Shown here: piece after piece, positions 9,729 to 10,020 of the stretch
Numbering within the stretch: position 1 is the stretch's first letter
Layout: each line of letters starts with the position of its first letter
Origin: Octopus bimaculoides
Taxonomy: Eukaryota
Assembly (NCBI RefSeq): GCF_001194135.2
Contig: NC_069004.1
Coordinates: 7,513,758-7,577,757, forward strand
Direction of reading: 5' to 3'
Length of the DNA: 64,000 bases
The notes under the pieces: generated by a model
Seen by the model: only the letters and a program-made list of their open reading frames with translations
Told to the model about the DNA's origin: nothing
The model's database searches: none
Position numbers and translations under genes: made by a program

Positions 9729-10020
9729 TACAGTTCTATATTTAAGAGATGAGGAATTATTAACATTATTTACATTTGACGGATATTTGTCCTCATTTTG
9801 TTTGTTGTTAACACAACGTTTCGGCTGATATACCCTCCAGCCTTCGTCAGGTGTCTTGGGGAAATTTCGAACCTGGGTTCTCATTCCTAACGATGTTACT
9901 ATTATTATATTATTATTATTATTATTACTATTACTATTATTAATCAGGTCGCTGCCGTGAATCGAACTCGGAACCTTGGGGGTTAGTAGCCCGCCTTCTT
10001 AACCACTACGCCATATGCCC
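9729..10020 (-). mobile_element. tRNA-headed element containing a hammerhead ribozyme (SINE/retrozyme-like)
   Basis: A box 10013-10003, B box 9967-9959, (TAA)n spacer, hammerhead 9855-9810, about 80-nt tail. No TTTT until just past the 3' end. Confidence 0.7.
9810..9855 (-). ncRNA. Type I minimal hammerhead ribozyme
   Basis: GACAC-CTGACGA-A-GGCTG-gagggtatat-CAGCC-GAA-ACGT-T-GTGTT. Intact core, 5-bp stem I, 5-bp stem II, palindromic stem III (ACGT). Confidence 0.85.

Follow-up and report, generated by a model that had tools for sequence, protein, structure and literature searches.

Minimal hammerhead ribozymes occur by the thousand in animal genomes, where they are mostly ascribed to truncated Penelope-like elements (PLEs); minimal type I hammerheads of PLEs were reportedly the subject of Lunse, Weinberg and Breaker in 2017. 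The element considered here lies on the minus strand (9729..10020) of a 64,000-nucleotide stretch of the Octopus bimaculoides genome (NC_069004.1, positions 7,513,758 to 7,577,757), which is called the window throughout, and places such a hammerhead behind a transfer RNA (tRNA)-like head with the promoter boxes of RNA polymerase III (Pol III). It is 292 bases long and represents one copy of a composite, non-autonomous retroelement, built from the head, an internal microsatellite, a linker and a hammerhead unit. We consider it likely that it belongs to a family resembling short interspersed elements (SINEs), which consists of a tRNA-derived head, a (TAA)n tract, a linker and one PLE-type hammerhead unit, and which is transcribed by Pol III and copied by PLEs.

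In PLEs, the minimal hammerhead sits in a pseudo-long terminal repeat (pseudo-LTR) beside the ORF (open reading frame) for reverse transcriptase (RT) and GIY-YIG, whereas in the octopus element it follows the head with its A and B boxes. Four traits of the PLE ribozymes that go beyond the search descriptor were given by Cervera and de la Pena: an unpaired residue that falls after position 9 and before 10.1, the pair G10.1-C11.1, a palindromic 15.2-16.2 segment without loop 3, and a helix I of 4-5 bp (PMC4209133). Minimal hammerheads lacking helix III cleaved weakly, and only as dimeric or trimeric constructs (PMC4209133). The metazoan non-LTR retrozymes consist of non-coding repeats in tandem, with a type I hammerhead in every repeat (PMC7229834); for them, a unit-length RNA between cleavage sites is predicted and a dependence on PLEs has been proposed (PMC7229834; Li, Clavereau and Pollet 2026, preprint); those of Xenopus are homologous to PLE pseudo-LTRs (preprint 10.64898/2026.07.22.740005). 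The family considered here resembles the retrozymes in its non-coding tandem repeats with hammerheads, the predicted unit-length RNA and the proposed dependence on PLEs. Their units differ from ours in measuring 170-400 nt, and no promoter-bearing head has been described for them (PMC7229834). The window copy has one hammerhead only and cannot release a unit; tandemly repeated relatives, which were found in a second genome (see below), consist of 129-nt units behind a tRNA-like head.

Sm-alpha and Sj-alpha of Schistosoma, reportedly described as SINE-like hammerhead retroposons by Ferbeyre et al. in 1998 and by Laha et al. in 2000, are short and non-coding, combine Pol III-type boxes with a type I hammerhead, and are found both dispersed and in tandem. 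By description, the octopus family is alike in all of this. The Sm-alpha hammerhead is canonical, with loop-loop contacts and fast cleavage of the monomer; again by description, it is set apart from the minimal, dimer-dependent PLE type of the octopus family, in whose relatives, moreover, each array has a single head and multiplication is limited to the 129-nt ribozyme unit. Sm-alpha has been called SINE-like and non-autonomous (PMC8490949, PMC6155905). The tRNA-derived SINEs of cephalopods (OR2/CORE-SINE and Ceph-SINEs) share with our element the tRNA-related A/B-box head and the design of head, body and tail (PMC5786205, PMC4758252), but contain the CORE/Ceph domain (CCTTGGG...), RTE-derived parts and a simple-repeat end where the octopus element has a hammerhead unit. 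We rejected an identity with Ceph-SINEs or CORE-SINEs: the CORE/Ceph domain is absent from 10020-9729 and present in a neighbouring SINE at 9160-9385. For the combination of a tRNA-like Pol III promoter with a PLE-type minimal hammerhead, a published description was not found, Sm-alpha and the retrozymes being its relatives. The literature searched describes neither octopus hammerheads nor a PLE-dependent tRNA-SINE, in keeping with the previous statement that no such family was known from cephalopods; the giant squid genome paper gives only a count of 235 Rfam Hammerhead_1 matches.

The hammerhead motif occupies 9855-9810 of the minus strand and reads GACAC-CUGACGA-A-GGCUGG...UCAGCC-GAAA-CG-UU-GUGUU. 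Stem I (GACAC/GUGUU) has 5 bp and stem II (GGCUGG/UCAGCC) 6 bp; the core segments are CUGACGA (9850-9844) and GAAA (9822-9819), and cleavage is predicted after U17, between U9815 and G9814. All core nucleotides (C3-A9, G12-A14, A15.1-U16.1 and H17) as well as helices I and II are present, and the fold of minimum free energy forms both stems. The four additional PLE traits are likewise found: the extra, unpaired A9843 between A9 and 10.1, the pair G10.1-C11.1 (G9842-C9823), the palindromic ACGU at 9819-9816 with C9818 and G9817 as 15.2 and 16.2, and the 5-bp helix I. Judged from its sequence, the window hammerhead agrees with the minimal type of PLEs in all diagnostic traits, including the CUGANGA...GAAA core and a dispersed single-copy occurrence, and the sequence-only reading, which had related it to the minimal type I hammerheads with palindromic stem III of PLEs, was right on this point. 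A descriptor of the minimal hammerhead matched once in the window (9855-9810) and never in 400 Markov-simulated windows, a comparison of limited weight, as the descriptor was written after the motif had been seen. The Rfam hammerhead models gave no match at the gathering threshold, none at E<=10 on 407 nt, and none in the related loci; we do not count this silence against the motif, because these models evidently miss the type without helix III.

That the ribozyme had been called intact holds for its core nucleotides, but not for its fold as a monomer: an RNA with one unit cannot form helix III, since the two base pairs would enclose no loop. Because helix III is the palindrome ACGU, the ribozyme is expected to act only as a dimer, and the probability of cleavage in cis by this single-unit copy is low. 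Counting A14 and U17, the palindrome reaches six nucleotides (AACGUU, 9820-9815, minus strand), which in a dimer could give an over-extended duplex, possibly without activity, in competition with the active fold. In an alignment of 19 units, 75.7% of the cells are paired under the hammerhead pairing, compared to 14-46% when the partners are slid, and the core is conserved across both lineages, the octopus-type copies and the second genome.

On the minus strand, A box, B box, (TAA)n, linker, hammerhead and tail follow each other in this order; layout and coordinates of all features listed in the sequence-only reading were reproduced base for base. The head (9945..10020), read from the sequence as tRNA-like with the boxes of a type 2 Pol III promoter and matched by homologous heads in relatives, opens with GGGCATATGG. 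Its A box TGGCGTAGTGG (10013-10003) agrees with TRGCNNAGTGG in 11 of 11 positions, and 33 nt downstream lies the B box GTTCGATTC (9967-9959; GAGTTCGATTC from 9969 if the preceding GA is included), which comprises the core GTTCGA plus flanks. When the two lineages are compared, the columns of both boxes rank with the best conserved ones. In addition, the head shows a partial D arm, a T arm with four of five base pairs and an anticodon-like loop CTACTAA (9989-9983), while the acceptor stem is unpaired; the first base of the element coincides with the expected tRNA position 1. It is on the two boxes, the D-arm/T-loop resemblance and the anticodon-like loop that the label "tRNA-like" rests. Two characteristics of a SINE2 element are present: an internal promoter of A and B box with tRNA-like spacing at the 5' end, and a dispersed multicopy family whose members have common 5' and 3' ends. 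A protein-word search with the longest ORF of the head gave no match. Between 10020 and 9694 of the minus strand, the only run of four T residues is found at 9726-9723, in flanking DNA 3 nt beyond the end of the element, where it may serve as a Pol III terminator. No such run lies inside the element in either lineage, so the previous claim that TTTT is missing from the unit and first occurs just past its end was correct. From these features we infer that the element would be transcribed by Pol III.

The head is followed by an internal (TAA/TAG)n microsatellite (~9942-9896); a TAA-like tract stands at the same place in every octopus-type copy, while its counterpart in the second genome is only TAATAT. 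Because of this short counterpart, we regard the tract as an expansion of an internal microsatellite and not as the tail of a SINE. The linker (9856..9895, 40 nt) contains a second B-box-like motif GGTTCGAAA at 9873-9865 and is 83% identical to the corresponding parts of a longer linker in the second genome (locus L010), which also bears the motifs AGTTCGAAG and GAGTTCGAC. Beyond the hammerhead, the unit ends in a tail of about 80 nt (9729..9809), which would belong to a predicted 3' cleavage product beginning at 9814. Conservation of this tail, at the DNA and the translated level, extends to P0001, a predicted Octopus bimaculoides protein, and to the tandem 129-nt units found in the second genome; the terminus in both is ...AAAT(A/T)TAGA(C)AACT(G)TA, and the window element and L010 have the end ...TAGA(C)AACT(G)TA in common. 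A search for contigs that encode P0001 gave none. Neither an A-rich nor a microsatellite tail follows the 3' end of the element. After it, 35 nt that are not family sequence lead to an assembly gap (9539-9693).

In order to decide whether head and body are parts of one element, related copies were reached by using spurious ORFs as handles. When the read-through translation of 9998-9696 was used as the query of an exhaustive HMMER search, 114 cluster representatives were matched, and a profile search gave 2,919 translated ORFs; UniProt entry A0A0L8FV75 (Octopus bimaculoides) matches the read-through frame of the body with 85% identity. The matches form two groups, namely octopus-type copies (Logan assemblies, SRR118693xx) and copies of a second animal genome (ENA ERZ21867824, NCBI GCA_052426985.1). 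Pattern scans for the hammerhead unit in the JGI metagenomes and in IMG/VR were empty. DNA was recovered for twelve loci, and among these the linkage recurs. L002, whose flanks differ from those of the window, contains all parts from head to tail, linker and hammerhead included; its head has lost 12 nt by deletion, and its TAA tract is degenerate. L014 contains two copies of head plus body, the heads lying 30-50 nt upstream of their bodies and being matched by the window head alone at E 1e-5 and 4e-3. Of L001, the 3' half of the head, the TAA tract and the body are preserved; in L013, where a contig ends, the head is probably retained on its B-box side. The head status of L004 and L012 is unclear, L005 is 5'-truncated, and L003 starts within the TAA tract and is uninformative. 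In the second genome, two copies in L010 and one in L011 combine a homologous head (GGACACATGGCGTAACGGTTATAGG...GGTTCGATTC) with a longer linker and a hammerhead unit. A global alignment of window positions 10020-9729 with L010 7869-8216 (348 nt) keeps the two collinear over their entire length, terminal bases included, with identities of 77% in the head, 83% in the linker, 82% in the hammerhead and 66-79% in the tail. Finally, a profile made from the other copies only has a single match in the window (10020-9756, E 2.7e-58), which begins exactly at 10020; the 3' end at 9729 is common to L010.

These results bear on the explanation that a tRNA-SINE ending in (TAA)n came to lie by chance beside a 5'-truncated PLE remnant, or that the remnant was inserted into the microsatellite tail of the SINE. 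PLEs indeed prefer microsatellite targets (PMC8557442), nearby octopus SINEs end in microsatellites, and blastn searches with head and body as queries detected no second copy in the 64-kb window. Yet order and spacing of head, TAA tract and body recur at independent loci with different flanks, the collinearity with the second-genome element extends over the full length although that element lacks the TAA tract, and one profile match crosses the junction of head and body. A chance juxtaposition was rejected on these grounds and is given a very small residual probability. The sequence-only reading, which had proposed a non-autonomous composite family, had itself named the linkage of head and body as the check that could overturn it; homologous heads precede hammerhead units in L002, L014, L010 and L011, and at the loci recovered the proposal survived. 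We are highly confident that head, TAA tract, linker, hammerhead and tail constitute one repeated element and that the composite family is real, a judgment drawn from the aligned copies.

The two groups of copies are in different states. The consensus of the octopus-type copies is intact in the hammerhead core, but only one of ten, the window copy, keeps every core nucleotide; as the other nine have lost core nucleotides, the octopus family looks old and mostly dead. Copies of the second genome are 90-96% alike, several with an intact core. Each of the ten octopus-type copies, that of the window included, has exactly one hammerhead unit, whereas tandem repetition is frequent in the second genome. 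What is repeated there is a stretch of 129 nt that extends from the hammerhead as far as the 3' end; L009 and L011 contain three such units each, and many ORFs contain two, three or more. A retrozyme has at least two tandem hammerheads flanking the unit; this arrangement is confined to the second-genome relatives (L009 and L011), and the label of a retrozyme, which had been suggested for the window element, had to be withdrawn for it and for all octopus-type copies. Loci of the second genome that represent the young family with intact cores are L009 8090-8550, L011 300-692, and L010 7062-7352 and 7866-8216. This genome offers a better system than octopus for studying cleavage and circular RNA.

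Many of the related loci contain inverted pairs. Seven of the twelve loci have an inverted partner at most about 520 bp away (L001, L002, L005, L009, L010, L011 and L014; for L002 it is based on a 43-nt match with E 2e-4), compared to none detectable upstream of the window head. The partner is often 5'-truncated and abuts the 5' end of the other copy head-to-head, and several ORFs run from the reverse-complemented head directly into the forward unit. For PLE insertions, both partial tandems and inverted, 5'-truncated copies next to each other have been described as typical (PMC8557442). By analogy, the insertion structures of the family and its tail-less 3' end are PLE-like.

Some 2,900 predicted "proteins" (P0001-P0227 etc.), among them A0A0L8FV75_OCTBM, are translations of the non-coding hammerhead repeat. 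Many of them begin with MANGIRTGDPRGFNKGRSSKFREGSRVRQTPEEGRRTYRPKRCGNNNKDEDNSPKTLNDKNHQASSQKFRQ, and each of the two halves of the hammerhead core is represented in these translations by a motif, PEEG/PDEG and PKRC.

According to the mechanism that we propose, transcription by Pol III would start at the head and continue past the ribozyme as far as a run of T residues in the flanking DNA. The module recognized by the reverse transcriptase/endonuclease of a PLE would be the hammerhead unit, which the enzyme would then copy by target-primed reverse transcription. Copying of this kind would explain the 5'-truncated, the tandem and the head-to-head inverted copies. Self-cleavage to unit-length RNA is plausible in copies with tandem units, but not in cis in copies with a single unit. 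That the putative partner of the family is a PLE has in our estimate an even chance of being correct. A wider proposal is more tentative, and we lean slightly against it: the family could be the first recognized superfamily of tRNA-promoter SINEs mobilized by PLEs, with a Pol III head and the hammerhead unit as RT module, whose tandem copies self-cleave to RNAs of ~129 nt that could circularize (a "Pol III retrozyme"), and which would be conserved between octopus and one or more further lineages of animals.

Several results weigh against the reading of a Pol III-transcribed, PLE-copied family. A gene for PLE RT or GIY-YIG was found neither among the ten window ORFs scanned with Pfam, where the only domains were fragments of a zf-RVT and a mariner type and none belonged to a PLE, nor within 8 kb of L009 and L010, and none of the loci examined showed a PLE ORF. 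Target-site duplications were not detected around head plus TAA tract or around the whole unit, as segment pairs drawn at random matched equally well as the best flank matches (P 0.36-0.60). Twin priming of long interspersed elements (LINEs) can also yield inverted structures. L001 and L002 were chosen for their head-like translations, which introduces an ascertainment bias; of the loci picked regardless of a head, only L014 is clearly headed and L013 probably so. ARAGORN reports no tRNA in the window and none in the related loci, and the Rfam tRNA model RF00005 has no match at E<=10 in the window element (407 nt) or in L010. Lastly, the stem II pair 28-41 is C-G in the second genome and U-A in octopus, but this change corresponds to two CpG decays, and among 216 translated units mismatched C/A intermediates (24) are about as common as wobble U/G intermediates (27). 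For both reasons, we claim no selection for pairing; covariation in stem II was dropped as too weak a sign of it.

The missing PLE gene and the inversions are also compatible with a different origin, namely a conventional tRNA-SINE mobilized by a LINE of the RTE, CR1 or L2 type, in which the hammerhead was captured and is a passenger or a relic. LINEs are abundant in octopus, and modules are exchanged among SINE bodies, which are mosaics (PMC5786205). On the other side, the element is without the A-rich or microsatellite tail that the LINE-type SINEs of the same window have at the 3' end. Moreover, the hammerhead contains the PLE-specific extra nucleotide and the palindromic helix III, and both the tandem multiplication of the exact 129-nt unit from hammerhead to end and the very frequent head-to-head inverted copies are hallmarks of PLEs and retrozymes. 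We judge mobilization by a LINE to be improbable, with roughly one chance in six left to it.

The failure of the tRNA models, which miss the head in every copy, and the unpaired acceptor stem could alternatively mean that the A and B boxes are a mere resemblance, and that the element is a non-autonomous PLE derivative or a solo pseudo-LTR-like repeat, transcribed by Pol II or by read-through; the latter is invoked by models of animal retrozymes in the literature (PMC7761336). This explanation has to account for an A box that fits the consensus completely with a B box at 33 nt, for the conservation of both boxes between the lineages, for the lack of internal T4 runs in both, and for a first base at tRNA position 1. 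It appears even less probable than the LINE-mobilized SINE. As regards the term "tRNA-headed", which the sequence-only reading had used, the boxes and their tRNA-like spacing stand, but no tRNA model detects the head. We therefore describe the head as degenerate and apparently tRNA-derived, its origin from a tRNA being weaker than was previously implied.

Other repeats were noted in the window. At 9160-9385 (plus strand) lies a tRNA-derived SINE of the CORE/OR2 type (...ccttgggaagtgtcttctactc...gccttgtgagtgaatttggtagacggaaactgaaag...), which ends in (TA)n and recurs seven times elsewhere in the window (25231, 4234, 33826, 42967, 23659, 41254, 22119), being far more abundant there than the hammerhead family. 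It is followed at 9386-9538 (minus strand) by a SINE-like fragment with the B box GAGTTCGAATACC and the body ...cttgcgcaagacactttacttcatgtttctccagttcactcagctgtagaaataatttgcgacgtcg, which is flanked by (AT)n/(ACAT)n, enters an assembly gap on its 5' side and has no second copy in the window. This gap (9539-9693) has (TATG/ATAC)-type repeats on both sides and probably hides a microsatellite only. Altogether, 19 runs of N are found in the window (further examples are 7398-7743 and 11280-12155), typically bordered by TA/TATG/CA microsatellites, which indicates that the scaffold breaks at simple repeats. A (TAC)9 microsatellite is located at 10155-10182 (minus strand), about 140 nt upstream of the head. 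The two Pfam matches mentioned above are a C-terminal fragment of a LINE RT at 8001-8519 (plus strand; zf-RVT, E 1.5e-5, which narrowly misses the curated cut-off) and a piece of a mariner-type transposase at 15027-15326 (minus strand; Transposase_1, E 8e-13).

The family exposes an artefact, as thousands of "proteins" in public collections are translations of a repeat. As to how retrozyme-like RNAs are transcribed, the family offers a concrete and testable route, with its ribozyme unit placed, in two distant genomes, behind a Pol III promoter of the tRNA type. The family also provides a defined template for asking what the reverse transcriptases of PLEs recognize, and its one-unit and tandem-unit copies form a natural series for dimer-dependent cleavage and circle formation. 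If a superfamily of PLE-mobilized SINEs were to prove true, some of the "orphan" minimal hammerheads, which are reported by the thousand from metazoan genomes, would be explained, and retrozyme-like elements would gain a dedicated promoter.
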